In this document: in pieces, positions 35,101 through 64,000 of the stretch
Numbering within the stretch: the first letter of the stretch is position 1
How the letters are laid out: the number at the start of each line of letters is the position of its first letter
Assembly (NCBI RefSeq): GCF_000150275.1
Contig: NW_002060944.1
Coordinates: 9,574,556-9,638,555, forward strand
Reading direction: 5' to 3'
DNA from: Trichoplax adhaerens
Taxonomy: Eukaryota; Animalia; Placozoa
DNA: 64,000 nucleotides
Notes under the pieces: generated by a model
Seen by the model: the letters and a program-made list of their open reading frames with translations, nothing else
Told to the model about the DNA's origin: nothing
Database searches by the model: none
Translations under genes and position numbers: made by a program

Positions 35101-38100
35101 AAACTTCCTGAGTAATATCAATATACATCCAACTTTTGCTAATTTGAATTTAGATCTTATGTACCATAGCATTAGCCATGCTAAGGACTACTCCATAATT
35201 TTTATCCAGTCCAAATCCAAATTCATAAAATGCCTAGCAATAAGAAGAAAATACGTAACCCTGAACGGACTCTACAATACAAATATTTGAGTCCGTTCAG
35301 AATCCCGCTTTTTCTTATTTTGGAATGTTGTGAATTTGGACTGGTGTTACAGTGTTAAATACTGTATTACAGTAGAAATAACTATGTTAGGATAATTCTG
35401 TTAGACTATCCTTATTTAGTTAACTTCTAATTTGGATATACTGTATTTTAATATAGCACTGACTTTTTATGACAGTGACACTTATACACATACTGAAATT
35501 ATAATAGTTATAATAGGGAATGCAAATCATCTGCTTACAGTTCGAATCATGTNNNNNNNNNNNNNNNNNNNNNNNNNNNNNNNNNNNNNNNNNNNNNNNN
35601 NNTAAAATTAATATCTAATTCAGTAAATGATTCTAATGTTAATTGTATTAACTATGACTCATGAACTATTGAGGAATAGTATATAAATGCAGTATATCGT
35701 GAAATAAAGAAGAATTGTCCAACTTAGTGTTTAACGTAAAATACGAGGCGTTTAAGTCTTTGTGTAGTCTGCTAGTAGAGCAAAAGTGTTTGTGATAGTG
35801 CAGATATCGTTCCTTGATACGTGGTTCAAGGAATTGACTTATTGATCGTATATTGCGTTATCTTGTTGCAAAGCTGTTTTGTGACAACTGGATAAAATTA
35901 TGGAGCAGTCCCTAGCCATGCAAAGTGCAAAAGCTTTCATATTAATGATTTATTAGTCTAATCTGAAGTTTAGAAATAGTTTTCATTACTAATATGTAAA
36001 ATCGTGACTGCGTTTAAAATAAGTAAAGCCTTTTTACATATTTTACCCATCTAATTTGTCTAATCAGCTAATGTTATATAATGCACGATTGTAGTTGGCT
36101 ATTGAGAAAATGATTGCTTTATACCTGTCTAGCTTTTAGCTCCATATTGCAAAGAATATGCATTGTCTGTAGCGCAATTAATCTTTTCTTCTCTCAATTT
36201 CGGTTATAAATTCCCCTTACATACTATATTATTACTTATTTTCGCCAAGCAGTAATTATATTACATCCTTTAAATTAGAATCTGTTCATTGATTGGCATT
36301 TAAGTGTTTAACAGTGTAATTGTACTTGCACATAATATTAAGATGAAAACTTACAATTTATTCTCCTCCACAAACGGACCACACTTTACGAATAATTCTT
36401 GATATTATTTCTTTTTATACATCAGAAAATTAAATTATAACCGCATAAAAGATGTCGATGCATCAGCAATATTTCGAGGAAGCAACTACAATTTACAAGA
36501 ACTGTAAGTTACTTCCTATATCATTCTTACATTTCCACGCATTCTAACGGCAATTTATTAAATTGATCTGGTATAATTGCTATAGAGTACTTAAGTTAAT
36601 TGTTAGCAGAATATTGTTCATAGATAAATAGAAAAATTAACTCAGATATTCTTTTCTGATATAGGCACTTAACCCATAACCAAATAGCTAACTTTACTAA
36701 TCCGAACAACGTACAATTTAACGCGCTTCGATTGCTGTAAGTGTTGCATTTATCTTTAATACAAATTTCAAGATCGTGTAGTCAATTAATTTTTGATGTC
36801 ACAATTTTATGTTTATTAGCAATTTAAAGCAAAATCAATTATCAAGCATCTGTGGCAGATCAGATTTGCTAGCAATAGCACCTAACCTAGTAGAGCTGTA
36901 TGTATTCTTTTTAAATATTTTCTGGATAAGTGGTTTAACTAATTAACTTATGACTTAAATTTCCGTAGAAACTTGGATTTCAATCAAGTCCGAATTCTAA
37001 CAAGCAGATGCTTTAGAGCACTTTCCAATTTACAGAAACTGTATGCATTGGTATTCGTTCGATTTATTAATTTCAAAATCTTTAGCTTTAAAATTCTATT
37101 TAAGCAAGCATGCTTAAATTGGCTGTTAAATTCATATAAGTCAAGTTACATTTCATTTGCTTATAGGTCAATAATATCAAATCCGTTAGTAATTTTAAAA
37201 GGTATTTCATTCTATGGATCTGCTACATTAACTTCAATGTAAGTAAGCCTACATTAATTACAGTTTTAATTCATTTAAATCGAAGTATTAATAAGTGTAG
37301 TAGAAATTTAGCCTCAATGTATGGTCAATTTAATTAAGCTTTTTGTTAAGCCTTGTGAAAAAAGTTTTCATATTGTAAAAAAAAACTTAATCAGCTATAC
37401 GGATTCACTAATTATGCCAAGAACTTGACATCGATTACAACGATATTATATCAATAGTTCATTAAATGAAAATATCATGCTAAAAATTTTCATATGCAAG
37501 TTCGCCATTTATCGAAAATAACTTCTGATATTGAGAGTCATAATTGGATAACAAATGAAGTTAGATTTCAGATTACCTCATAATTTTACATCTAAAATTT
37601 GTACAAATTTGCTTTAATATTTAATATCTAAAATCCTTAGAGGCTTTAATCTCAAACCTTTTAATCATGTTCATTTTCAAGTTTATGCTTTTTTATATTT
37701 TTAACCCAATATCCGTCATTAGAGCTTCCTCACGTGCTTATTTATGCTGTACAGTACCAGCTAAGATTACTGCGTGCACACCAGTTCCCGATTTAGATTC
37801 AGCATCAAGTTGTGAAAATATTCTCGCTCATACCTCTTTACAATTAGCTGTATGGGTTATGGGCATCACTGCTTTCGTTGGAAATATCCTTGTCATGTTT
37901 AAAATTCGTGCTAATAAAGATCGCAAAACAAGTAAGGCTACTGATCTAGTCTTTAACAGCTTAGCTCTATCCGATTTTTTAATGTCCATATACCTGTTTA
38001 TTATTGCTGTTGGTGATATAATTTATCGCGATCGTTATGCTCAATATGCAGAAGAGTGGCTGAGCAGTCCAGCATGTGTTATTGCATCATTTTTAGTGTG

Positions 38101-38719
38101 TACATCAAGTTTAATGTCGGTTAGTATGATGCTGTTTATTGCCATCGATCGTTATTCCCTCGTTGTAAATCCATTTTCATCCGACGGAAGATATAAGCGA
38201 ACTAAGACATCATTATTAATAGGATGGTTGCTGACTTGTATTTTCGTCGGTGTACCGATTATTATGGGTATTAATGAAACTGGAGATATGCGTTTATATC
38301 AGTTTAGTTCTATTTGCTCTCCAAGTAATCTAGACAATACATTCTATAGTGGTTGGATAGCTGTATTTGTAGCATTACAAATAATATGTTGGATATCAAC
38401 CGTAATTATTTATTTGTTCTTATTAATGACGGTCGGTAAATCGCAGCGCTCAGTTCGTAGCAATGCCCGATCTCGTAATTATGCTATTGCTATCCGAATA
38501 TCGCTTATTTTAATTACAGACTTGGTCGCTTGGCTACCCATCTATGCTATTTCTGTTATTGCTTTGATTAATGGCACCATCAATATATTTGTACTACAGT
38601 TTGCGGTTATTTTGGCAATACCATTAAATTCAGCGATTAATCCATATATTTATACAGCAACTGGAACGGCATGTTTTCTTCGATTAACTACTATTACGAG
38701 TAAAAAATCTTCGTCATGA
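8027..38719 (+). CDS. Giant leucine-rich-repeat GPCR (LGR family, RXFP/type-C-like hinge and 7TM), ~67 exons, ~2,000 aa
   Basis: Signal exon 8027-8114 (MTSTRLMMMKISIISICYIILQFNLLQAS); LRRNT exon 9987-10101 (QCPQECRCRSRTTITCC); about 64 phase-2/phase-2 exons of mostly 72 or 75 nt from 10307-10378 to 37167-37238, each one LRR (e.g. 12844-12915 YLGNNKIQRISDGVFAGLNSLRTL; 26453-26524 YLTSNEIDGIDEEAFTGLDALTNL); terminal exon 37723-38719 with hinge YLCC..CTPVPDLDSASSCENIL, TM3 IAIDRY, TM6 TDLVAWLPI and TM7 PLNSAINPYIY. Confidence 0.88.
9987..10101 (+). CDS. LRR-GPCR exon 2 (LRRNT cap)
   Basis: cctag|...|gtacgt; CPQECRC-x7-C pattern followed by IPMVNVTEL leading into the first LRR. Confidence 0.85.
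10307..19939 (+). CDS. LRR-GPCR exons 3-23: mostly alternating 72-nt / 75-nt LRR exons
   Basis: Exons 10307-10378, 10498-10569, 11079-11153, 11626-11697, 11890-11964, 12315-12386, 12562-12636, 12844-12915, 13098-13172, 14853-14924, 15347-15421, 15554-15625, 15789-15863, 16567-16638, 17784-17855, 17992-18066, 18291-18362, 18545-18616, 18970-19041, 19210-19284, 19868-19939; all AG..GT, phase 2, LxxNxL/I consensus. Confidence 0.88.
11373..11540. repeat. Diverged tandem repeat, 2 copies of ~89 bp
   Basis: TACGATAATACTAAG..CTCATCTTAC..TAAAGTAATAC.AGCAGCA.CTAG.AGATAT at 11373 and again at 11462. Confidence 0.7.
13431..14018. mobile_element. Solo LTR related to family B (588 bp)
   Basis: TGTCACAA...CGTACCGTGACGCA termini, TSD CGACT (13426-13430 / 14019-14023); shares terminal motifs with 22941-23373. 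Confidence 0.75.
17078..17222. repeat. Interspersed repeat shared with 29847-29919 plus ~30732-30803
   Basis: GTGACGCTATAA.TATA..ATAGTATTCG...ATATAGCTAATC and TAAGT.AGTAAG..TTGGCGT.TGTAGACT are contiguous here but separated by ~810 bp in the second copy. Confidence 0.6.
20785..37238 (+). CDS. LRR-GPCR exons 24-66: ~43 further single-LRR exons (66-132 nt, all 3n)
   Basis: Examples: 20785-20856 QLSKNEIHNLRNISFMGLNRLTTL, 22275-22346 YLFDNEISLIKPGSFANLNNLRFI, 27143-27214 YLRSNRIEFIQPDAFYGLNNMKEI, 29253-29324 NISNNRLENIEPDLFNSISSLKEL, 31364-31435 MLDHNQITVIENRSFLGLSKLITL, 34327-34458 (132 nt, Cys-containing), 36969-37040 NLDFNQVRILTSRCFRALSNLQKL. Confidence 0.85.
22582..23414. mobile_element. LTR family A variant (short 5' part) hosting a nested LTR
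   Basis: TGAGA...TGACA termini, TSD ATACC (22577-22581 / 23415-23419); 22607-22940 and 23374-23414 align to the 3' half of family A. Confidence 0.8.
22941..23373. mobile_element. Nested solo LTR, family B (433 bp)
   Basis: TGTCAC...CGTACCGTGACA termini, TSD ATCGT on both sides. Confidence 0.85.
32771..33400. mobile_element. Solo LTR, family A (630 bp), in an LRR-GPCR intron
   Basis: TGTGA...TGACA termini, TSD ACATC on both sides; colinear with 5996-6625. Confidence 0.9.
35182..35914. mobile_element. MITE (possibly hAT-like) with ~35-bp terminal inverted repeats, interrupted by LTR-A
   Basis: Left TAAGGACTACTCCATAATTTTTATCCAGTCCAAAT versus reverse complement of the right end TAGGGACTGCTCCATAATTTTATCCAGTCCAAAT (after removing the LTR); internal inverted repeat CTGAACGGACTC/GAGTCCGTTCAG; flanking duplication (A)GCCATGC, 7-8 bp. 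Confidence 0.8.
35345..35886. mobile_element. LTR family A copy spanning an assembly gap, inserted in a MITE
   Basis: TGTTA...TGACA termini, TSD ACTGG; near-identical to 5996-6625 on both sides of the N-run. Confidence 0.85.
37723..38719 (+). CDS. LRR-GPCR terminal exon: hinge plus 7 transmembrane domain (rhodopsin class)
   Basis: Inside the 350-aa ORF 37667-38719; the likely acceptor cattag at 37722 joins in phase 2; seven hydrophobic segments, DRY and NPxxY motifs, short C-tail. Confidence 0.95.
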
Positions 38720-40837: not shown

Positions 40838-43800
40838 TTATTTTTTAGTTATAATATGATTGATCGTAACAAAGACAACACATGCAATAGCCCAAATATT
40901 GATCACTGGAATCCATAGCCAGTGCTTAAAAGGCGATGAATAGATATTAACTTCATTTCCTAGTTTATCTCGAGCTTCTTTGCGTCCGTAATAAACTAAC
41001 GTAGAAGGAATGACATATTGAACTCCAACGCCAGCATACGAGCCGGTAATACCAGCTAAAAATTCCAAATTCTTAGTAATAAGAGCCAAAGTTACAGGTG
41101 GTATGAGGGCTAGTAATGGAAAGACGATGCGGTCTATCCAAAATGGATAAATTTTATCTTCTTTTAGGAGCAAAGATTTTAGATTGTTACGTAATGTGAC
41201 CCCAATAATTGGAAAATTAGAACTAAGAGTGAAAACTGGAAAGAGCGATAGGAAAAAACTGATAAATTTAACATGATAATGAGTAAAATTTAATGTATAT
41301 AAATCTTCCAGCGAGTGAATTGGAAATGTAAATATGGCAGTGTGAGATAATAGCGCATAGAAGGCTAAAACAGTAACGTAATCTCCTAATAGAATATACA
41401 TGACATGCTTTTTCTCACGAATGGGTGTAATCATCGATGGCAATGAATGTTGGCACATGAATGAATAAATACAGATGCCAAAAAATGTTGGAATACCAGC
41501 AAAATTAGCTACCGGTGGATGACCTCTAGCCTTACCACTACCTAGAAAGATGAATGTTATAGAGAGCATCATAGCAAAGGCTGAAGATTTGGAAATTGGT
41601 ATTTATGACGGATATTGTAGAAGGAAGAAACGTAAAAATGCAAAATTAGTCGTTCATCATTACAATATTCATGAATTCATTGCTATCTACAATGGAATAA
41701 TTTAATTTTATGTAGTGTAATGTAAAAAAATACACGTCTTATAAAATATAGGCGAATCTCTAATCGCCATAAATACTACTTAACTTCAATATTTTGAATT
41801 AAACTGTGATAAAAGTGATCATTAATTAAAGAAGTGATATTTAGCTCACCTAGCCACCGTAATATAGATGTTGTGACTTGCAAGTATTTTGTCTTTTGAA
41901 CATTGAAAAAGACAAATGGTCCAAGACAGATGGTAAAAGCGGCCTAATTAAATTTTTAATACTATTATTTACTCTTCAATATCTTTTTGGGACATTTAAC
42001 TGATGTACAGTCCTATTTAGTTTAGGAATTATTTCTGTTAGTGTGTTAGAAGGAATGCTTACTACAAAGATTCGATAAGCACCACCAACTGTAAAATTTC
42101 CCCAGCAGGGTAATGAAGTATTTAGTCCGGTTCCGTTTAAATCATTACTAACCAAAAATTAAATAATTAATAACAATAGCGGCACTTGGATAGTTAAGTT
42201 TTATTTAAATTATTAATTACGGATTGAAATTCTCTTGCACTTACCAAGCAACTTTGGTCAGAGATTTTGCAACGGCGACAGCATAAATTGCTAAATCGCC
42301 ATATAGGTAAATACAAATACACAGATAGAAGAAATTGTTGCCAACTATAAATTTAAGTATGCCATAATAGAGAATAATTTAGTAATGAAAATCATATATG
42401 TAGTAATTGAAAAAAGTCAAAAGATTCAAGAGGCTTCCTATATTACATCCAACTTGAAGTAAAACACTTATTGGTAAAAGCCTCATATCTTGCAAAGATG
42501 AAATACCTTTATTGTAAAACATTCCCGCCATTTTCCCCTAGTTTACAAAATTTAATAAAGCATGTCGATTTAATGATAACCTTAATCTGGCAATAGAAAG
42601 AGATAATGCTCGCAATAGGAAAAGGATAAAAAGTGGAATCAATTTGAAATCAATTAGTCACTAAATTTATAGCATACGAGTATACTAATCAAATATGGGG
42701 CAGTATTAATTATTACTAATAAGTTTTAATTGCAAAAGTCGATTATTAACCTGGTATTGAAACATGATCCAATATCTATAAAGGCAGTAAATCACAGAAA
42801 GATTTTAACCGATGCAGCTATGAAATTAATTGATGAAAAGCTCAAAAGCATAGTCATTTGCTAAACTTATTTTGCTGATAGTTGTTTTGAGAAAAATCTA
42901 TTAGTAGCTCGTTGTTTCTAATAGAAACGAGTTAGATGAAGATTTGAAATTTTGGCTTGCTAAATTAACTGATAAATGTCCAGGATTTATAAAAATATAC
43001 TAAATTAAAATAGTGTTATCTGCTGGTGCCAATACCAATCATTTTAACGATTTGTACCATACATTAAGTAATAAAAGCATTACTGAATTTATTCTTTAAC
43101 ACGACATGAGCTCGTTTGATTACAACTTGTAGAAGGATTTAACTTACTATTGACGTGGAGATTCATTAAAGAATCTATCTGGAACTACTCTATTAGCTAT
43201 TTTTGGCTGAATAACTTTATGTCAAGAATCAGATTGAAGATAGAATTCCTCTTAATTTCTTAATGCCTTAAATTTTTTTATCTGGCTATTGATTGTTGAA
43301 TTACAGTTACGGTAATTTCTGTTATCTAATATTTCAATAATAATAAATTGCTATACCATAGATTTTAGCTAAATGCAATAGTTTAATAAAATTTACCAAT
43401 TCTACTCTCTCTTTGATTTCAAATACATTGGATATGTATTCCCTCTTAATTTCTCCTAAAGTCCATATCAAATATATATGGATTAATCATGGCATTTATT
43501 AAACTTATAGCAAATGAGAAAGAGGATACTCTATTAAGATCAGCCACTTGTAATGTTTATCGTTAACAGAGCTTTATTATTTACATCAATTAGATTATAA
43601 GTCATAAATCTTACCATTAATTTCAATTTCGAGATACTTTCGAGTTTGAAGTACTGGCGTTCTTTCAGTATTGATTGATTTATCTGTTTCTCCTTCTTGA
43701 TCGCTATTCGACTATAGATAACAGTAATTAGATGAGATTCTTAAATAATTTAATTGTACACTGCACTATTAAATATAATCATAAACGAATTCAAGTATAG

Positions 43801-49020: not shown

Positions 49021-52000
49021 TGATTGAATTAAATGATGTTGAAGTAAAAATGGAACGGCGTACCAATACTTTGCACTGTATAGGCATATGATAATGAATC
49101 AGGTAATTTGAACTTTCATTACAATCATATTTACTAAATTTTCTTACTTCGCTACAGTTACAATAAAGAGCAGATAATCAATAGTTTTTGTGTCTTAATT
49201 CAAATAGTATAACCATCAATTATAATATGAGAACAATTAACAGTCTCTTGAGAGTTAAGAGGCACTGTGCCGTGCTAATTTTCGTGTAAATAACTTATTG
49301 GTTAAACCAACAGCATCATAACAAAGCTACGTTCCATTGCCTATAGTCTTATTTCAAGCCATTCAATAAAATTGACATTGAATATGGCAGAGCATGCACC
49401 TGCTTACTGATAATGAGCTGATATAAGGTCTGTAGTGAAAATTGATCGATAAACTTGGAAACAATTCTGGAAAAAAATTCTGTTTTATCACTAAGCTGTA
49501 ACAGCGCTCCATCGTCATTAAAAAATTTTACGAATCAGTTTTGTACCGGAAACTAAACTTTCGGGAATCGTTCGTAGATAACGACGTAGATCTCCAACTG
49601 ACTTTTAGAGACCTATATGGGTGAAAACGAACTCTTTTCTTCGCACAAAGATGACTCTTTCAAATATTTAATAGAGAATTCCTTTACTGTTCTAAGCTAC
49701 AATATGTGTAAAGCCGTCACTCACTAACATCAGCCGGAATTGATCAATTTATTACCATGATCGTTGTTATATATCCTAGTCACCTCAGCACAATGCGACT
49801 ATTAATATTTTAGTTGTGGCCGTTTGTAGGCCTCGGCATAGCGACGAGCTACTAAAGCTATAATAACTTATAGCGGCAGCTCGTAGACAAAGTTGATTCA
49901 AAATCGATTACGTTAGAGCCAAATTGGACATTATCCGGTGTTAATGAACAGACATAAATGATTACGCGTTCCAATTAGCAATTATGTTTTATTGCCAGCT
50001 CAGAAAAACAAACAAATAACAAGCTACATGAGGTAATCGAGTCACCAAATTATTACAAAGCTTAGCACTGTAACAGGGTATAAGGTTGTCAGAATTATGT
50101 TGAATGGATAAATTTATGTAAACGGCTGAAAAATTCTTATAAAACGATATATTGAGAATTTATGTGGTATGTAATTGCAACAATGTTTGTACATATTGTT
50201 GTGTGAAATCATCGAAAAATAAAAAATTACAGGGTAGCTTCAGGTAGAAAGTATTGATAGATTTTATGAGATGTACGTTTACTTTCCTTCCCTCTTTATC
50301 TATTCAATAGACTTAGGTAAACGTCCAAAGGTTTTAGTCTTGTAATACTACTTGTAAGTCGGAAAAATAATAAAAAATGCTCAGCCGGTTGTTCCTTGAC
50401 CTTTTTGAGCATTTTAAAATAAGGGAAGACACGGTAGTATTCTTCTATTGTAAAAATTTTTTTGTAAAGATCAATTTCAGATTTACCGTAAAATTTTCTA
50501 TTGCATCTGTTACGAGTTAGGAATAATCCTGACTTGTAACAAAGGTTGATTATGTATTTCGAATATACACGACTGAAAATTGAAATATCGGTTAAGGTTT
50601 CTTAAACCAGTTTAATCGTACAAGTCACCTCGTCTTTTAGAAATTATCCAAACTAATGCTCTAAAAGGTTTTCATGTATGTGTAGAATTAAATACAGTTT
50701 AGCACAACTAAATTCAAAGTGTCAGCATTACATTGATCACTTGCTAATAGTACGCTAGATTAATATACACGTACATAAGTGTATATTTTGCTATCCCATG
50801 AAGATGTTTCATTTAAACTTACAAACTGTGCTTGCAGTCATAAAATCATTCAAGGTGATAGTTATAATCTAGTTAAAGTAGTTGAGAAATGCAATTACTA
50901 TTTTAGTTTATCTAATTACAGGTTGCTAAAGTATCATTTGTTTAAGGCCAAAGTTACAGTTAAAGAAAGCGTGAACATTACTGACATAGAAGCGTATGCC
51001 CATATATCAAACGTAATATGAAAATAATATACATGTCACGAACATCATATAACAGATCTTTCCTCTACTTGTGCAAACTTATATTTTATGCTAACTAGTC
51101 ACGATACTGCTGTTATAGCAGGAACTATTTCTCATAAATGGTGATGTTGATAAACTAATTGTATTTCTCTTATATGTAGGATTGTGTTAATAATAACATC
51201 TTATTAGCCGGATACAGAACAATTACTACTTAGTAACAATACATTGCAATCTTCAGCAGTCAATGTCGCACTTTATAATGCTTTACTTCAGCCTGGTCAA
51301 TCACCTAGTAAATAAATTCTTAATTAATTACTACTAAAAGCCTTTTAAAAATGAAATATTGAATTAAAGATTTCTATTATGAGAATTCTATACTTCAGCG
51401 TAACAGTTAATTATCTAGGGAATAAATTTATGAAGCAATAAACACTGCAGGTCTTCAAAAAGTGAAATAATGAATTAGCATTTTCCCCATTCCATAAGAT
51501 AATATGCTACACATAAAACTGTACTATACAATAATGTTAGTATAGATAGTGTTGCGTTACATCAGGTAACTGTCAGAACATAGCAGTAAGATTATTCGTA
51601 TACCGAAGTAAAGTCTACAAAAACACTTGATAAATGATCTTACACACTCATCACCTAGATCAATTTTTAAATTAATTTACAGAAATTACCGTATCGTAAC
51701 ATCCTTATTTAAGATATTTCGTTAATTATTCTTTCTATATAATTTCTTTGAACTAGCCTTCAAGATTACTAATATATGTTTACTACATTGTTATTTTTTG
51801 AATACGATTCAAATTCGTCTGAATCTATCATCAATTTACAAAGAGTAGGATAACGAAAGAAATAACAGGGAATCTGCTATTTAAAAATAAATATATACAT
51901 AAGAACTTAATACAATGGTTTGACAGATTTATGGACGTCCTCGTTCCGCAGCTTTGAATAGTATCAGCTAAAATTAAACAAAAACATACAAATGCAAATA

Positions 52001-52614
52001 TTTTAAATCTTCAGAGAGTTGAACTTTAATTAAGTTAATGATTTGAGTAATCCATTTATTCATACATTGATTTTGAAATATCTAATTATATACTATCTTG
52101 AATAGCTTCAGGCACGGCGAATTTTTGATGCGTTGCAATCTAATTCCATTGCAAACTGCATGATTACGAATCTTTAATACGGTTTACTAAGAGAAAGTTT
52201 ATAAAGTAAAAGAAAATTTCTTGCGTTGCAATTGTGATTGTGACGTGGTCAAATCCCTTTGAGAATGACATAACCATGAAAACTAAAACGTATAAATAGG
52301 CTTTTACAAGTTAATTCTTGCCATTACTAACTCACCGCGATTGAATAATTTCTTGTTAGGAGTATATCAATTTTGATTTAGATTCATTTAGAAAGCAACA
52401 TATCTTGGAAAATGTCGAAAGTTATTCCTTCCGTTTTGCTCATCGCCTGCGTCCTACTGGCTTTCTTTCATTCTATTGAAATGTAATTAAGGCTAAGGCT
52501 AGAATTATCAAGTTAAATTTTGTTTTGCAAGTGGATTAACATAATCGACAAATTTCAACTGCTTCTCCGATTTTTTAATTTCATCTCACGTTTATATTTT
52601 CTGTTCTACACTAG

Positions 52615-55600
52615 GAATCCTCTCAGGTAAAATATGAAATATCATATAATAAAAGAACTTAACAGAAAATTCTAAGTCATGAACATCTTTCTTCTTTGCT
52701 TCAATTCATTTGATTTTTGCTGTCATCTAACTGTCGGAACATGTATCTGTAGCCTTAATGAAAACGAGATGTGAGTTGTAGTTGTAAGGGTACTATAACT
52801 ATCTTTTTCAGTGCAGTAACAAATAAACATTTACATTTGTACAGCGTTATTAATGTCCTTTTCCTCTTTTCTGTAATATCTTTCATGACACTCTTACTAC
52901 TGTCACTACTTGGCTTTTCACTGCAGAAGGGAACTATAGTAAGTTAAGCCAGTTTGATCAACTATAGATAGTGTGGTGCCTACATCGACTATAATGCACG
53001 TAGCTATGTAATCCAAATTGATATAAATGTTGAAAAATGACCACTCCCTCTGTTTCTGTCTGTATATTCCATTTATTCTCTTGGGACTCTACACGAAATA
53101 ACACAATTATTATAGCGAAGAGTAAGATTAAAATTATGTTTACTAGTATTAATCTCATATTCCGGCTAAATTTCAACTAATAATACAAATAATTTCTAAT
53201 ATTCTATGCATGGACCTGTTCGTGAAATTTAGATTTTCGGACAAAAGAAGAAGACCCACCAAGTACGATTTGAATAAATTCTGAGATATAAAACTTAATG
53301 TATAAATAATTATAGTAAATGATTATCTAATATTTTTACAGGACATGGTAAGTAGCTCTTCAGGATTCCTTTGATTAATACATTGGTGAAAAAGGTCTTA
53401 ACTCATTCTACTTGTCTTTACCAGTTACGATGGCCCATATTGCCTCGTGAAGTACGGAAAATCAGAGTTCTGCTTATAATACTTTGCTATATCGATATCA
53501 AATTTTTCTTACTATAAAAATAAGTAGCAAGAGTATATTGCAAGAAAATTGCGTACGAGACAATATTTGAAGATGTTTAACGATTGAAATTTTCATGAAA
53601 GCATCATAGCTTGATAATAAAATTAATTCATGCCTGAATACAGTGTTTTGTCATTACAGTACAAAACTATTATCAATTCAATTTGTTTTAGCATATATAG
53701 CATATGAAGATAACAACGTGTATGTTCATTTTTTTTTTATTTCTACTATAATTATCTACTGACTTATTACTGCAATGATCTGATAAATCCTTATTAAGTT
53801 GAAATTTATTTTTAGTAGTACCTGTAACGTAGAGCAAAAATAACCTCTAATTTTAGCAATGTGTACATAAATTTAAGTTTCCGATAGAGTAATAATTATA
53901 TATTTTCTTTTCTTTTATATGCTATTGCTACAATTGGGTATTAAATATAATCCGAAAACAAATACATTCTCAAATTGACAAACAGATCCAGTAGAAATTG
54001 GTAAGTATGATTGCTGTGTCTCATACAGTATACCTTGCTTCTAGTTACAATAATCTAATGAATTATCACTAAAGTAATCACATTTTAAATTATCTATCTA
54101 CCGAGAGAAATTAATCGATAAATTTCATTACATATGTAGTATTATCTTTGCAAGATATCTGACTAAAAATGATTGAATTTAATGTCTGATTGAAAGTTTA
54201 ATTTTAATTGCCCTTAAATATATCTTATGTTAAATGGTAAACATGATTCTAATTAAATGTTTATAAATTGAAACCAAAATTATAAGCTACTGTTAACACT
54301 AATAATGAAACTTATATTTTACTCCTATTCCATATCTTAATAAAAACGAATAATACCAAAGCTGGTAAGATAAATTTTACATACTTACATCCTGCTATTA
54401 TTCAAAATATTTGATTCAATTTATTATAGTCATTTATGGTAAAATTTTAAGACTCGCCATATTATACTATAAATATTTAATGCTTTACAATTGTCTTATA
54501 TGAAATTATGGAATGTTATCCTGTCGATACCAATTATATTTTATTTATTCCACCGTAGCTTCGGGTAAGTATATTAATGATTATGTTTCACGTGTAATTT
54601 CATTCTTTAAGCTATAAAAACAACATTATTTATTAAGAATTAAACTGCAGTCGAAGAGTTTGAAATATGCAAGTATGCATATAATGCTTTGGGTTAGCGC
54701 ACCTAAACTGNNNNNNNNNNNNNNNNNNNNNNNNNNNNNNNNNNNNNNNNNNNNNNNNNNAAATATGAGTTATACGCTATAGAGTATAACTATTTTTATG
54801 ATTACATACAGGCATAACAGTTAGAATAATGTCGTTGTCATTTTAAAGAGAAACCAAATAGTTAATTATTAAACCGAACAAAAGTTGAAATGTTACTATA
54901 ATACTAATCAATATTTGCTTTTAATCATTTATATTATTTTATACTTGATTGATGAACAAACGGTGGTAATTCCCATAGAACTTGGTAAGTGCTATACTGC
55001 TGATAAAAATAAATTAATGATGCATAATTTAGATAAAAATACTATTTTAGTTTTGTACAGTAATATCTTTTTAAAACTAAATACAGTTGCTTCAGCAACT
55101 TTGCTGAAGTGCCATTTTTAAGAATTCAGTTATTACTTATTTTACATAGAATGGCTGGCGATAACAGTTACAGTAAATTTGAGAATAATTGCAATTCGAT
55201 AGCAAGATGCTCTATTGTTTCTGAAATATACTCTAGTATAGCTCTTTCATTATATCTTATTTGAGAATAGATTAATTTAGTCAATCTTATTTGGGGATTA
55301 TTAAGAAAAAGTGGATAGTGTTTAGAATCATATTTGTTATTAACACAGCGTATTGCATAAATTATTAGACATTTCAATTAATTACTTACTAAATATACTT
55401 GTATAGCCACTAGAAGACTATTATATTACTCATTCTGAAATCATTAAGACATATAAATGAATATTAATGCGATATGATTACCTCTAACTATTAAAAATTT
55501 AAAAACAGTCAAAACTATTTTACTACCTTATAGCTCTGTAACAGTTGCAATATCATTTTTTCTATTTCTTTTCTGCTATGAATGCGAACTACTATTCTCA

Positions 55601-58600
55601 ACTACAAACACAAAATTTGCATTTAACAGCTAGTAAGTTATTATCTTCTTATATAATTGATTTCATTTATAATTTTTAACTCGTATATTACAATGTTATG
55701 ATAATAATCTTTCTGAAAGCTAGTATATGAGTATTGGAACGTATGACTACGATACTGTCGTTTGTGTTCTTAAAACAAGAGATTCACAGTAATTGTTATC
55801 AGACACTGTATCTCTAACATCAATTGAGGTTTTTCAATTACAAATTATATAGCAGTCCATGAATTTTAAAATAAAAATTAAATATCTATTGATACCTAAT
55901 CGGGTAATAATTTCGTTTTTTTTATGATCACATTGTTCTTACGATTCGCCATGATATCTTGGTACGAAATATTTATCTATAGTTCGTAAGTATGATGCTA
56001 ATAAGTAAAATAAATTGATAAGAATTGTACGCAAATATCAGAAAACCCTTTCAGAATTTAATATTAATCCATTTTATCAAATATACAATATCACAGTAGT
56101 TAAATAACTAATGCATAATATATAGGAATAATAATTATAGTACGGTCAATCTTTGACCATAATAAAATTCTTTTAGAACGAGTTACCGCGACAATTTCAT
56201 GTGTTTATACACGTATTATTTTAAACTAACATGCGTTAAATGTCACAATTATAATTAGTACTTTCAGTTTGCCTACAGTATCATCAAAATATTAGACGAA
56301 AATCATTATTTAGCTTTGAATTTTTATTGCATTTATAAACGGTAATGTGCAAAATTAAAACTTATCCATGGCATTATTTTAAAAGTGCTATGTATAATTT
56401 ATTTTGTTCCGTTTCATATGTTAACTGAAGTTATTATTTTAGATGCTCTTCCGCTATTAGTAAAATTCATGACTCGTCTAACACATTCTCTTTAATTTAT
56501 TTGTGTTATAAATATCATACCTATCTATTCCCTGGCAATGGTCGCATTAGGATGTAAGTAAAGCAATTAGATATAACTGTAAATGAGAAAATTTATTGTA
56601 ACATGGGTCATTACAGCTTCTAGTAAAAATTATAGTAATATCAATGCAGGATAAACTAATAACACTAATTGTCACTTGCAAAACATCGCAAAACATCGCA
56701 AAACGGAAATTGCAACTGTTGAGTTCGTCGTAACCAACATGCAAAATGCGAAGCTCTTAACTTATTCCTAGTGTTTGGAGCTAACAAAGTCTCTTTTAAT
56801 TGACGTAGTCGTACGATTTATAGTAACGCTAATGCAGTTAATTGAAATTCGGTGCAACATACTATATCATGATCCTTCTAGTTCAAGATCATAAGGAGTA
56901 GCTACTCNNNNNNNNNNNNNNNNNNNNNNNNNNNNNNNNNNNNNNNNNNNNNNNNNNTTATCTTGTTGCAAGCTGTTTTGTGACAGTAGAATATTGCTAT
57001 GAATTACAGTTAGAAAATCAATATGTTCATCACGTACAATAACAACATGACTTAGCAATATTGCTAATATGGAAAGTATATGAACTCAGAATTGTAATGT
57101 ACTTTAATCCAAATATGAGTTATACGCTATAGAGTATAACTATTTTTATGATTACATACAGGCATAACAGTTAGAATAATGTCGTTGTCATTTTAAAGAG
57201 AAACCAAATAGTTAATTATTAAACCGAACAAAAGTTGAAATGTTACTATAATACTAATCAATATTTGCTTTTAATCATTTATATTATTTTATACTTGATT
57301 GATGAACAAACGGTGGTAATTCCCATAGAACTTGGTAAGTGCTATACTGCTGATAAAAATAAATTAATGATGCATAATTTAGATAAAAATACTATTTTAG
57401 TTTTGTACAGTAATATCTTTTTAAAACTAAATACAGTTGCTTCAGCAACTTTGCTGAAGTGCCATTTTTAAGAATTCAGTTATTACTTATTTTACATAGA
57501 ATGGCTGGCGATAACAGTTACAGTAAATTTGAGAATAATTGCAATTCGATAGCAAGATGCTCTATTGTTTCTGAAATATACTCTAGTATAGCTCTTTCAT
57601 TATATCTTATTTGAGAATAGATTAATTTAGTCAATCTTATTTGGGGATTATTAAGAAAAAGTGGATAGTGTTTAGAATCATATTTGTTATTAACACAGCG
57701 TATTGCATAAATTATTAGATATTTCAATTAATTACTTACAAAATATACTTGTATAGCCACTAGAAGACTATTATATTACTCATTCTGAAATCATTAAGAC
57801 ATATAAATGAATATTAATGCGATATGATTACCTCTAACTATTAAAAATTTAAAAACAGTCAAAACTATTTTACTACCTTATAGCTCTGTAACAGTTGCAA
57901 TATCATTTTTTCTATTTCTTTTCTGCTATGAATGCGAACTACTATTCTCAACTACAAACACAAAATTTGCATTTAACAGCTAGTAAGTTATTATCTTCCT
58001 ATATAATTGATTTCATTTATAATTTTTAACTCGTATATTACAATGTTATGATAATAATCTTTCTGAAAGCTAGTATATGAGTATTGGAACGTATGACTAC
58101 GATACTGTCGTTTGTGTTCTTAAAACAAGAGATTCACAGTAATTGTTATCAGACACTGTATCTCTAACATCAATTGAGGTTTTTCAATTACAAATTATAT
58201 AGCAGTCCATGAATTTTAAAATAAAAATTAAATATCTATTGATACCTAATCGGGTAATAATTTCGTTTTTTTTATGATCACATTGTTCTTACGATTCGCC
58301 ATGATATCTTGGTACGAAATATTTATCTATAGTTCGTAAGTATGATGCTAATAAGTAAAATAAATTGATAAGAATTGTACGCAAATATCAGAAAACCCTT
58401 TCAGAATTTAATATTAATCCATTTTATCAAATATACAATATCAGAGTAGTTAAATAACTAATACATAATATATAGGAATAATAATTATAGTACGGTCAAT
58501 CTTTGACCATAATAAAATTCTTTTAGAACGAGTTACCGCGACAATTTCATGTGTTTATACACGTATTATTTTAAACTAACATGCATAAAATGTCACAATT

Positions 58601-61600
58601 ATAATTAGTACTTTCAGTTTACCTACAGTATCATCAAATATTATCATATAAATATATCAAAATATTAGACGAAAATCATTATTTAGCTTTGAATTTTTAT
58701 TGCATTTATAAACGGTAATGTGCAAAATTAAAACTTATCCATGGCATTATTTTAAAAGTGCTATGTATAATTTATTTTGTTCCGTTTCATATGTTAACTG
58801 AAGTTGTTATTTTAGATGCTCTTCCGCTATTAGTAAAATTCATGACTCGTCTAACACATTCTCTTTAATTTATTTGTGTTATAAATATCATACCTATGTA
58901 TTCCCTGGCAATGGTCGCATTAGGATGTAAGTAAAGCCATTAGATATAACTGTAAATGAGAAAATTTATTGTAACATGGGTCATTACAGCTTCTAGTAAA
59001 AATTATAGTAATATCAATGCAGGATAAACTAATAACACTAATTGTCACTTGCAAAACATCGCAAAACGCCGGAAATTGCAACTGTTGAGTTCGTCGTAAC
59101 CAACATGCAAAATGCGAAGCTCTTAACTTATTCCTAGTGTTTGGAGCTAACAAAGTCTCTTTTAATTGACGTAGTCGTACGATTTATAGTAACGCTAATG
59201 CAGTTAATTGAAATTCGGTGCAACATACTATATCATGATCCTTCTAGTTCAAGATCATAAGGAGTAGCTTACTCTTTCATCTTTAAAAATTTTGTCTGTG
59301 ATATGTCTGGTATTGTACACGGTACTATAACAGAGTATATATGTCTATTCGCGGAGAGTGATAATGTCTAATATTGCATCCATGCCCTATTTGCAAAGTA
59401 CATTATTATTTGCAAAACTAAGAAAGCGATACGATTTCAATGAGATACATTCCTTGTTTCATACATATTTTATCATTCAAGTAGTTACAGATATTACCGT
59501 TCGGTATCCTGTAGAAATTCAATCAAACCATATCGCATAAATTTTCGGTCATACTACGAACAACAACACTACTTTCTCTTACTATCTATGTCAAAACACT
59601 AAAGTTGTAATATGTTTAATTTTAACAGTACGGCACAGCTTAAGAAATTTATGATTATAGTGCACTTATTAATACAGCATTTGAGTTTCAGCAGAACCAA
59701 GTAGTAACATCAGCAGAACCAAGTAGTAATTTAAATGACTTCAATTAACTAAGAATTTCTGTTAAAATCTTGCACATTATTGGTATGTTTATTGATTTGA
59801 ATTAGAAGATTTTAATTGGATACGTTAAAATTAATTGTGTAAATAAGGTTGATCTATACTAGTTAATTCAGCAAGAAGAGCAAATACAATGCAGTTATTG
59901 ATTGTGAGTTCTTTAGAAGGATTCTTCTTGAGTATTTTAGTAATAGCTATCTAATCCAGTAGTTTCAGTTTAGGTTAGTAATTTAAGTAAAGTGACAAGA
60001 TAGCGGCTCTATATTATTTAGTAATATATTGTCAGGTATTCCCATACAAATCGATTATGTATGTATTACTATAAGATGTTCCATAATTTATGAATCAAAA
60101 GGAATGTAAAGTCTACAAGTAAATTAAGAATGTATATTTGCTTGCTGTTGTAACGAAAATATGCATATCATTTAATATTTTTTCAATTTAACTAACTTAA
60201 CGTTGTTGGTATTCAAATTTTATCTTAAACTTGAGGGTTTAACACCAATTCTATCATTAAAAGTTGAATGTATGTAATTTCAAACTAAATATTTAATAGA
60301 TGATGTCTATTAGGTAACTATTTTTAATTCCTTTTACTATTGCTCCGCTACCAACGCTGACACCATCTAATAATGCAGTACATCAGCGTAAGATATAATT
60401 ATAATCAATTTACTTAATGCTATTTCATATATTTTTTATGCTTTACTTAATATAACTCTTCATTTTGTTGTATGGTAAGTATTTTAAGCTTATCTTTTTT
60501 ATTAAGAATTATATACGATCGCATTAAGATTGCATTAGATAACTCAATCGTAGGAATGAAAATTATTGGTTTGAATTTTTTATAAATGTTTCAATAGTCT
60601 TAAATTAGGACTGATGTAATCTTTATTAGCACAAATAAATGTAAACCATTTCCGGCTAACAATTTTACATTAATTTCTAATTTGTATGGGCGATTAATAG
60701 CCTATCTAATCTTATTACTTTTAGCGTAAAATTGAGCCTTTAGGTATAGTAAACTTAGTTAGATGATCACAAAACCAGTAACGTGACCTTTTTGCTTATT
60801 ATTGATTATTATAATCACGGAAGGTGATGCAAAAGTCTTTTGGAAAATTATAGGACTGAGATACCATAGTTTATGAATATAATTGCAGATTTCATGCTCT
60901 ATATATTCTTTATAGTTAATGCATAGAAATTTGAAATAATTTATACTAGATATTAGATCGTATCATGCAATTGTCTTTGCATAGTTATGGTTAACTTACA
61001 TTAGGTACATTGCTTACGGTATACGAATACAGTATTATTGTATATATGAACGTATATACTGTTCCTTAACCTCAGTTGAAACTTGCAATAAAAATAAGTA
61101 CCTTTAGAATAAGAATCACATAATATTTAGGGCAGAGCACTTCAGTTTTAAAATAACAGACCTTAATAACATAATAGATGGAAATGTTTGTGTTAATTCG
61201 TATCAAGAAACAGCTTACAATAAATTGATCAGAATCATCAGCTACATATTACTAGGCTAATTTGATGAACTGGCAGTTTATAATATATTGTAGAGTAAGA
61301 TAAAAGATCTCTTCTCTACCTTACACAAAAAATATTATGCATTCATTGATTAAAGTTGTATCAGTTATCTTCAACAAATATTAAAAAAAAATGATTTTTT
61401 TAGACATTTGAAACAATTAAGATTTACTTTTATTTCTTTTTTATATCGACATCTCGTCTTTGCTTTCCTTTGGCAATTTACATTGAATTTACAGAAGCAA
61501 GTAAGTTGCCTATTTAGTATAGATAAATAATAAAGTGTTTAAGCTAGCTGTTCTTATGAGCGCGGTATTTCAGCAAGTATCTATGATCATATACTCGCTA

Positions 61601-63487
61601 AATTTACCTGAAGGAGAGCAAATAGCAGATTACTGATATAGATAATCATCTACACGCTAATGTGAAGTACAGTATCTATGACGTATTTGTTCGATTTATA
61701 CTTTAGTCTCTACGAGAAATTTTAGAGCAATCGACTAAGTGTTTTAGCTTGATAGCGATGTTATATCGATAATGTCTTGGACTGTTTGGGAATACTGAAC
61801 AATCATATATTGCTAGAGCATTGAAATTAATAAAGAATAGGACTAGGCTAGGATTAAATTCTGGAATAACAAAACAAATAATTTTTTAATTTTACTTCAC
61901 TTTTATAATTAATTTTTATGTACGATTCCGAAATTGGGCAATAAAGCGCGTAAGTACAATATTTTATTTACTTTATTTATTTAAATTCTAATAGTACCTT
62001 ATTTACTTATAATTGGATATTTGATATATCTTATTTCTGATATCAGTTACTATTGATAAAGATTTCGAACTTTATTTTAAATTGCTACGATATTAATGCT
62101 TTTATCAACTCTAGCGAAATTAATTGTTTGCATAAAGATTACATTAAACAAATTTGACGACGAGAAAATATGAATTTAGTTTCTACTGCCACACATTATA
62201 CAATTTTATCGCTAAACTACCAGTACTGTAGTTCGTGTGCTTAAGCTACGATAATACTTCACAAATTAGAGCGATATGCGAATAAATTTAATTTTATGCC
62301 TACTATTCAATCTTATGTATGCCATATATAATTGTCCTTCATGCAAAATTGATGATTTTCTAAAAACGAATTGGTCTATCATAAAGTGGGTAAGTATTAC
62401 TTCATAGATTGTTTACCTTTCCTGTCATAAGCGAGATTTTCGTGCAGAATAAATTTTATTTCAGGACTCTGTACCCTATATGTTTAATAATGTATTCATC
62501 CATGATCACGTTCAGTATTATATAGAATCGTAAGCAAGTTGAATTCGTGATTAAATAAGTTGTCATCACACTTTAATCATCTCTAAATAATAGAAGATAT
62601 TTTACGAACTGTTTTGTAAATTAGGTGAAGGTTTCAGAAACTTACCACATTTGCGACACTGAACAATGCTAGACTAAACTACAACGGTCACAGATTATTT
62701 CATTTCAGTCATTATAAAAACAGCAATGTAATGAAACTGCGATAATAGTACAAAGTGCTATACTATAACTTTTAGTATATCCGTAAAGTAAAAATTTCGC
62801 AAGTGGGTCTGTTTACCTAATTGTTAGATAATACGGTTTAGTACTAAGTCCGTTTACGTAATCTGATCATTAATAGTGATTTAGGCTACTCGCATTCATT
62901 TTCAATAATTAATTATATACAATTATTAATATCTTCCAATCATATTCTATGCATTTGAGACAGCATAAATTAAATTTATTACTATGCATAACCTGCGCTA
63001 TATTCTACATGGTCAAGAACGACTATCTATTAAAGTAACATACCTTTGTCAAAATTCAGATATTTTACGAAACTTAAAATAGTAAGATACTGATGTGATT
63101 ATGTATAACTATCAACTAATAGAATTGTCTTACTTTTTAAAATTGCACTTCTATGTCATGAACTGTATGACCATCAACGTCTCAGAGTGTAAGTTAAATA
63201 CTATCAAGCTGAAGTACATTTTACGACTAATTATTTATTGTTTGCTTTATATTATTCAGTATTAATATTCTACAATACGAAATTAATATAGCATTCTTTT
63301 ACCATTTGAACGTTCTGTACTTCATTGCCTATTTCAAATATTTTGCAACCATTCGTATACTACAATTAATCTAGTTTCTCGTAGATATTTTTTGTAGAGT
63401 ATCATTTTTATCTTTATTTTATTAATAATAACTTTCGTATTTTTAATTATGGAATATTTATACTATGCCCACTCGGAATGTTAGATG
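52615..63487 (+). CDS. Putative gene segment made of successive microexons (3-15 nt); both ends unresolved
   Basis: AG|n|GTAA[A/G] units: 52615-52626 (12), 53342-53347 (6), 53986-54000 (15), 54362-54364 (3), 54559-54564 (6), 54979-54984 (6), 55630-55632 (3), 55983-55985 (3), 56551-56553 (3), 60379-60387 (9), 61495-61500 (6), 61947-61949 (3), 62387-62389 (3), 63186-63188 (3), 63485-63487 (3). Phase-1 concatenation is open: xILSGHDPVEIAASELAIRLHQQATLEY. Confidence 0.65.
54761..59273. repeat. Near-identical ~2.15-kb direct duplication (54761-56907 vs 57111-59273); the first copy is flanked by gaps
   Basis: Offset 2350 bp; duplicated ORFs in the track (54885/57235, 55168/57518); scattered SNPs and small indels. 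Confidence 0.92.
56958..56984. mobile_element. 3' end of an LTR family A copy emerging from an assembly gap
   Basis: TTATCTTGTTGCAAGCTGTTTTGTGACA matches the family A terminus and directly follows the N-run. Confidence 0.7.
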
Positions 63488-64000
63488 GTAAGAATTGATA
63501 GAATAAAGGATTTAAAGTTTAGTACTTATCAAAAGTACTATATTTCAATTACATTTACGATCCCTCTTTCTCAATACTAAAAGAAATAGCTACATTTCTG
63601 ATGCCTTTCTCTAATGTCTTTCAGTGTCAATTAAATACTGCAGCATTAACAGAATTCAGCTGGTCATGCCTGCGATAGTATAGAATTAGAAGATCAGGAA
63701 TTGGTATGGTAATCGTTACAAGAAGAAGAGAACACTTAATTTAATCTGAAATACATCATGTATTGCAGTTGATTTTCTTGTAACTTTTAACAAAATTTAG
63801 TGGTAGGTTCTACCTAGCATAATTATAATCTAAGGATAATTTACAACATCTTATAGTGTAGGTTACATTGCGCACGTATTGCTCATAACCAGTAAAACCA
63901 ATGCTCGTTCTATTTTCGTGTACTGCAAGTACACGCACCTATTACTTGGACAACTAACGAGGTTTTGGTTTACTGCTCGTAAATTTGCTTCAATATTGCT

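Follow-up and report, generated by a model that had tools for sequence, protein, structure and literature searches.

The micro-exon genes (MEGs) of schistosomes begin with a signal-peptide exon, which is followed by 10-20 short symmetric exons separated by introns of 0.1-5 kb (bioRxiv 10.1101/2023.06.21.545858). These exons are mostly 15 nucleotides (nt) long, with a minimum of 6 nt given in the text and a range of 3-81 bp in the abstract of the same study (bioRxiv 10.1101/2023.06.21.545858). A gene of related design, in which half of the exons are 3 nt long where those of MEGs are mostly 15 nt, is described here from the placozoan Trichoplax adhaerens. The gene occupies the right-hand end of a stretch of 64,000 nt, referred to below as the window (assembly GCF_000150275.1, contig NW_002060944.1, positions 9,574,556 to 9,638,555, forward strand), and positions are counted from the first letter of that window. 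About 15-17 successive exons of 3-15 nt very likely carry nearly all of the coding sequence after the signal peptide, a reading to which a probability of roughly 0.8 is given. The features shared with Schistosoma MEGs are that tandem symmetric micro-exons would hold most of the coding sequence, that the product would be small and secreted, and that gene predictors struggle with the arrangement.

Micro-exons in RNA and in the genomic sequence

The RNA evidence consists of contigs aligned to 58001-64000 only, from runs X9 (on record as RNA), X11 and X5, which belong to three separate studies. Contigs of depth 41, 116 and 135 span 63627 to the end of the window, compared with a depth of 2-8 for intron pieces, and all three carry an identical 30-letter loose end before 63627. 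This loose end opens with a T, continues through the units beginning at 60379, 61495, 61947, 62387, 63186 and 63485 and closes with two bases of the last exon, the one at 63626 carrying the change G>A. An abundant mRNA thus contains the last six micro-exons (9, 6, 3, 3, 3 and 3 nt), spliced in their genomic order and followed directly by the last exon. The joined form is not a retrocopy, because the last exon is present only once in the assembly. Within the RNA-covered stretch all six GTAAG[TA] motifs that have an AG 3-9 nt upstream are used as donors, whereas the other three (60475, 61295 and 63082) are not.

An earlier note on this DNA, made from its letters, had proposed a micro-exon gene missed by gene predictors and had spelled out the string of junctions expected in its mRNA; the final 28 letters of that string are matched exactly by the high-depth contigs of the three studies. 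The proposal is borne out in this way for the six 3' units, while the case for the 5' units is their design. In the 5' part all ten GTAAG[TA] motifs share the same spacing, an AG at a multiple of 3 nt upstream, and because the design is identical at all ten, these units are very probably exons too, as judged from the sequence. The micro-exon gene thus has the support of RNA for its 3' third and of design for the remainder. Two like units, at 52927 and 53116, had been left out of the chain of 15 units given in the note. All 15-17 units are multiples of 3 in length, at least eight of them are 3 nt, and the introns between them measure 130-1450 nt. A further exon with a weak donor may lie at 59895-59903.

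The spacing is far from what the composition of the region would produce. On the + strand of 52,615-63,490, with a duplicated block (see below) counted once, an AG stands 3, 6, 9, 12 or 15 nt 5' of GTAAG[TA] at 16 of 19 donors, compared with 22 of 72 for the remainder of the 64-kb window (Fisher p 4e-5). Expected counts for the + strand of 52615-63493 were taken from 500 first-order Markov simulations of the region. GTAAG[TA] occurs 23 times (6.4 expected, maximum 14 in the simulations), AG-NNN-GTAAG[TA] 12 times (0.3 expected, maximum 3), and GTAAG[TA] with an AG at 3 or 6 nt 19 times (0.6 expected). Spacings of 1, 2, 4 and 5 nt on the same strand, with counts of 4, 1, 1 and 0, are without enrichment, and the minus strand of the micro-exon region is flat for the spacing of AG and GTAAG[TA]. 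The whole 105.6-Mb assembly contains AGNNNGTAAGT 3744 times and AGNNNNGTAAGT 3907 times, and reversed controls are likewise not rarer. Because AGNNNGTAAGT is no more common genome-wide than these controls, its excess at the locus, where it occurs 7 times and 0.16 times would be expected (Poisson p 4e-10), is local. Enrichment of multiples of 3 over simulated sequence, which the earlier note had put forward as a check, is therefore present, and other spacings do not share it. The seven units that the note had quoted were all found at the coordinates given there, and 8 of its 15 chained units are indeed 3 nt long.

Coordinates of the exons, promoter elements and assembly gaps of the Trichoplax micro-exon gene (positions in the window)
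Feature	Position	Strand	Remark
Second TATA-like box	52199-52207	+	read from sequence
TATA box TATAAATAG	52293..52301	+	read from sequence
Exon 1: 5' untranslated region (5'UTR), ATG 52412, 23-residue signal peptide and two bases AT; donor AT/GTAATT	52329..52482	+	predicted; start inferred
Micro-exon, 12 nt, donor GTAAAA	52615..52626	+	predicted; pyrimidine tract and AG are good
Candidate 105-nt alternative exon, donor GTGAGT	52666..52770	+	lead only; holds ATG open reading frame from 52679 ending in phase 2
Unit, 12 nt (gcag before, GTAAGT after)	52927..52938	+	predicted; absent from the earlier chain
Unit, 6 nt (atag before CGAAGA, then GTAAGA)	53116..53121	+	predicted; absent from the earlier chain
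Micro-exon, 6 nt GACATG	53342..53347	+	predicted
Micro-exon with three candidate acceptors (15, 9, 6 nt)	53986..54000	+	exon-1 frame stays open with the 9-nt form (53992-54000) alone
Micro-exon, 3 nt CTG, donor GTAAGA	54362..54364	+	predicted
Micro-exon, 6 nt CTTCGG	54559..54564	+	predicted
Assembly gap 1	54711..54760	.	inside intron
Units of block copy 1	54979-54984, 55630-55632, 55983-55985, 56551-56553	+	within 54761..56907
Assembly gap 2	56908..56957	.	inside intron
Micro-exon, 6 nt AACTTG, copy 2	57329..57334	+	predicted
Micro-exon, 3 nt CTA, copy 2	57980..57982	+	predicted
Micro-exon, 3 nt TTC, copy 2	58333..58335	+	predicted
Micro-exon, 3 nt GAT, copy 2	58924..58926	+	predicted; last T fits first letter of the RNA loose end (weak, one letter)
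Micro-exon, 9 nt TACATCAGC	60379..60387	+	joined in RNA (loose end in X9, X11, X5)
Micro-exon, 6 nt AAGCAA	61495..61500	+	joined in RNA
Micro-exon, 3 nt CGC	61947..61949	+	joined in RNA
Micro-exon, 3 nt TGG	62387..62389	+	joined in RNA
Micro-exon, 3 nt AGT	63186..63188	+	joined in RNA
Micro-exon, 3 nt ATG, donor GTAAGA	63485..63487	+	joined in RNA
Last exon	63625..64000	+	extends at least 71 nt past the window; TAA stop 63632-63634 in the exon-1 frame, rest 3'UTR

Both assembly gaps fall between units, in introns, and so the Ns cannot break the frame. The block 54761-56907 has a second copy at 57111-59274, from which it differs by three indels and, over 2140 nt, by 11 mismatches. In a contig from the X9 run the indels are in the state of copy 1 (61 of 61 letters), yet this contig extends into the single-copy DNA that follows copy 2 on its right, and it was concluded that the two blocks are most likely two haplotypes of one locus, set side by side by the assembler. 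The use of a single block copy in the earlier chain is justified by this reading. No repeat family was found at the locus besides the haplotype block. The sequence missing between 54710 and 56958 could hide further units.

In the last exon all three runs depart from the reference at the same five positions (63626, 63661, 63733, 63807 and 63936), and intron contigs differ from the reference by 1-3%. The haplotype in the assembly differs from the one that is expressed or cultured.

Reading frame and product of the chain

Exon 1 ends 132 nt before the first unit, its sequence is single in the genome, and its predicted signal peptide has one Lys followed by a 16-residue hydrophobic core, which ranks second among those of 374 ATG open reading frames (ORFs) in the window. 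No ATG occurs from about 52323 to 52412, that is, after the proximal start site. The end of the exon lies in phase 2, and with units that are all multiples of 3 in length, this phase would set the frame of the whole chain. As a consequence, every 3n exon would be read one base off the phase adopted in the earlier note, which had missed the signal-peptide exon at 52412-52482.

The exon-1 frame gives a precursor of 52 residues, or of 58 with the units at 52927 and 53116, which would add Arg-Arg and an acidic stretch. The predicted mature part has five cysteines in the arrangement CxxCC-x3-C-x11-C, each of them split TG/pyrimidine across an exon junction, and the stop falls 10 nt into the last exon. 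When the exons are put in random order, the exon-1 frame is open in 8.9% of the orders, at least five cysteines appear in 3.1% and both occur in 1.1%, while shuffling of the letters gives at least five cysteines in 0.08% of trials. The G>A at 63626 would change Val to Ile in this frame, and the other four last-exon differences lie in the 3'UTR. The predicted product is not basic in any frame. The gene probably encodes a small secreted peptide rich in cysteine, and the exon-1 frame with its Cys-rich product is more likely correct than not.

Several points weigh against the chain as modelled here. Exon 1 and the units at 52615-58926 are predicted from sequence, the RNA evidence being that for the units from 60379 onwards. 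The exon-1 frame requires the second of the three acceptors at 53986-54000, since the first, which yields the 15-nt form, gives TGA. Five is an odd number of cysteines. No predicted protein with the exon 1 signal peptide was present in the two protein libraries searched. The motif enrichments before the acceptors, to be considered below, were found post hoc on 17 sites. Finally, the contigs hold 234, 314 and 339 nt 5' of the last exon, as compared with a model length of 235-265 nt (exon 1 from the proximal TATA box plus the listed units); two contigs are 50-100 nt longer than the modelled 5' part, which means either that the start is further upstream or that exons are missing from the model.

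This excess length may reflect a distal start at the 52199 TATA-like box or inclusion of the 105-nt candidate exon, which fit equally well. The difference between 339 and 234 nt is 105 nt, and with the 105-nt exon included both contigs would begin at 52329. As an internal exon 52666-52770 contains stops in every frame; the ORF from 52679 also contains CC...GTC. Within 52100-52300, between the two TATA-like boxes, are a cAMP response element-like sequence, TGACGTGG, and two C/EBP-like sequences, GCGTTGCAAT.

Among alternative accounts, the one that survives best makes the gene a generator of diversity, its symmetric exons being skipped in many combinations as in the schistosome genes. The symmetry of all exons ensures that any skipping keeps the frame, and the units at 52927 and 53116 and the 105-nt exon may be optional. 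Variation of the protein one residue at a time by such skipping had been suggested in the earlier note. However, the contigs of the three studies show one joined form over the last six exons and no exon skipping, although contigs drop rare isoforms. Furthermore, skipping in the exon-1 frame would rewrite junction codons and would often remove a cysteine. A role of this kind is possible but improbable.

It is somewhat less probable that the phase chosen in the earlier note is the true one, in which case the product would be an amphipathic helical peptide whose coding sequence begins in a further exon upstream and includes the first 19 codons of the last exon. With the longest acceptors this phase is, as had been claimed, the sole stop-free one; indeed no other phase remains free of stops with each of the acceptors at 53986, and this one stays open as far as 63683. 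The G>A at 63626 would be synonymous in it, and the 50-100 nt of surplus 5' contig sequence could include the additional exon. Against these points, the join to exon 1 reads T/GA in this phase, as does a join that skips to 53342, and a join that skips to 52927 reads T/AA. This phase lacks an ATG throughout the chain and exon 1, no other signal-peptide exon is present nearby, and 63661 T>C would replace Leu with Pro. Its openness carries little weight, because the same phase is open in 43% of random exon orders. The 15-nt acceptor chosen at 53986 in the earlier chain is at odds with the exon-1 frame. The amphipathic-helix peptide is thus probably a reading in the wrong frame.

Slightly weaker again is the proposal that a short ORF ends early, at the TGA of the 15-nt form at 53986 or at the TAA of the 105-nt exon, and that most micro-exons are untranslated. 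The first AG is usually chosen in splicing, and the RNA does take the most upstream AG at 60379 and at 61495; the 105-nt candidate exon, moreover, matches the length difference between two contigs. However, all 15-17 units are multiples of 3, which has a likelihood of about 1 in 3^15 if length is free, and the genomic exon order is special for the exon-1 frame. A stop that is followed by many exon junctions triggers nonsense-mediated decay of the mRNA. About a dozen junctions would follow the early stop and should trigger such decay, yet the mRNA is abundant. Least credible is the view that the motifs are there by chance, or that the units are recursive splice sites of which no base stays in the mRNA, because, although AG beside GTAAGT is the design of a recursive splice site, no AGGTAAG occurs in the region, the statistics are far beyond chance, and the presence of the six 3' units in mRNA, 3-nt pieces included, refutes it for those units.

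Proposed removal of the introns and a candidate acceptor signal

In the proposed mechanism, transcription would start behind the TATA box near 52300, and exon 1, with its ATG at 52412, would encode the signal peptide and stop two bases into a codon. Each intron would then be in phase 2, since all micro-exons are multiples of 3. Factors bound to an acceptor and to a donor 3 nt away would collide, and the two sites could not be occupied together. A 3-nt exon is not recognisable as an exon, and it would follow that each intron is defined on its own and that the introns are removed in turn. Each micro-exon would first become the end of the growing exon, as in recursive splicing, and the T-poor 40 nt before the acceptors, bearing CGRA or TTGG, may act as a dedicated intronic signal.

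The putative signal was defined by comparison of 17 units with 37 ordinary 72-nt leucine-rich repeat (LRR) exons of a neighbouring receptor gene. In the 40 nt before the acceptors the T content is 34% for micro-exons versus 48% for ordinary exons (p 2e-4), and G+C is 31% versus 22% (p 5e-4). CG[AG]A precedes the acceptors of 7/17 micro-exons and 2/37 ordinary exons; for TTGG the corresponding figures are 6/17 and 0/37. Within the locus alone the k-mer enrichment is weak (p about 0.002, uncorrected), and the comparison with ordinary exons is the clearer one. On sequence comparison the element counts as a candidate intronic signal. A special donor strength of the micro-exons is ruled out, as ordinary exons use GTAAGT, the strong donor customary in this species, as often (78%, compared with 71% for micro-exons). 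Microexons of the SRRM4 type are marked by UGC near the acceptor, but TGC is not enriched at the acceptors here (micro-exons 5/17, ordinary exons 9/37, p 0.74).

Units of the same form occur elsewhere in the genome. At L002 2965-8594 (G000:C1413:9352964-9358593), on the + strand 215 kb upstream, 16 AG-NNN-GTAAGT units follow one another at distances of 180-900 nt. A conserved word, AATCGRATTAAATAG or AAATTGGAC..ATAG, stands before each of them, and the units lie behind a signal-peptide ORF (L002 1589-1733). The words AATCGRA/AATTGGA before these 16 units are related to CGRA/TTGG, and the L002 units are copies of one another. Although the AG-NNN-GTAAGT design is common to the two loci, the units of the micro-exon gene are not mutual repeats and are of mixed length, 3-15 nt. 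A tandem repeat on a small contig, at G000:C645:737-1579, with AGGATGTAAGT every ~165 nt, looks from its sequence like another array of intron-plus-3-nt-exon units. Another tandem repeat, likewise on a small contig, at G000:C862:2017-2736, has AGTACAGTAAGT every 72-83 nt.

As a tentative proposal, and one more likely wrong than right, placozoans may possess a dedicated splicing of one-codon exons, in which a T-poor CGRA/TTGG element replaces the T-rich acceptor region, and may rely on it to assemble an entire class of secreted peptides, here Cys-rich, out of strings of 3-nt exons. If true, the placozoan system would parallel the schistosome micro-exon genes by convergence and in a more extreme form, possibly with codon-level editing of peptides by splicing.

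Neighbouring genes and comparison with known systems

The receptor gene that supplied the ordinary exons (11626-38719, + strand) encodes an LRR-containing G protein-coupled receptor (GPCR). It has about 37 or more 72-nt exons, one leucine-rich repeat each, ending CT/GTAAGT, and it ends in an exon for a 350-residue seven-transmembrane part (37667-38719), a part related to TRIADDRAFT GPCRs and to GRL101-like receptors. A 244-residue ORF with several hydrophobic helices (transporter-like) lies between this gene and the micro-exon gene, at 40838-41572 on the minus strand. No large ORF is present in 42-52 kb, and the idea that the micro-exon gene is the tail of a bigger gene was rejected. A 72-codon ORF with a TTG start (52958-53176, minus strand), antisense within an intron of the micro-exon gene, has the most hydrophobic N-terminal stretch of the window and may be due to chance in AT-rich DNA.

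The exon 1 peptide (34 residues), compared with 1.84 billion representative proteins, retrieved only one spurious repeat protein, and when aligned with a 56-residue open stretch of the 3'UTR and searched it gave no candidate. A 30-nt word of the 3'UTR had no match in metagenome contigs of the Joint Genome Institute. Searches of the genome for paralogs, with DNA of 52200-54710, 52330-52640 and 59300-64000, the exon 1 peptide and the 52679 ORF, returned self matches only. Exon-wise protein searches revealed no relationship to MEG proteins, Rfam had no match in 51500-64000, and no paper was found in the literature on nuclear micro-exon genes in placozoans or on runs of 3-nt exons. The predicted product is also unrelated in sequence to trichoplaxins, Trichoplax peptides that are known from cDNA.

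Two implications follow if the chain is read as proposed. A chain of 3-nt exons puts splice-site recognition at its limits, and since acceptor and donor could not be bound together, the gene would offer a natural case, from an animal lineage that branched off early, in which to examine ordered, recursive-like splicing. In addition, such genes are invisible to predictors and no protein of the two libraries searched has the exon 1 signal peptide, so that catalogues of placozoan secreted peptides, which are used to reason on signalling before nervous systems, may be incomplete.

The gene resembles three known systems in part. The neural microexons of bilaterians (3-27 nt, SRRM4-dependent) likewise start from 3 nt, have strong donors and are missed by annotation. 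However, those of the SRRM4 type are single cassettes in large proteins, whereas the Trichoplax units would form an array that makes nearly the whole product. In the recursive splicing of long introns in Drosophila and vertebrates an acceptor is likewise followed by a strong donor, and stepwise removal of introns is likely here as well, but ratchet points leave no bases in the mRNA, unlike the Trichoplax units, which keep 3-15 nt that would be coding. The closest counterpart is provided by the MEGs, which are restricted to schistosomatids and occur in families, whereas the Trichoplax gene belongs to a placozoan and is without paralogs. Skipping is documented as a source of isoform variety in MEGs, while none was seen in the Trichoplax contigs, from which rare forms are dropped. 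The Trichoplax gene therefore likely works like a MEG without being a member of that family, and likely originated independently; a micro-exon gene outside the flatworms would mean that the architecture arose more than once.

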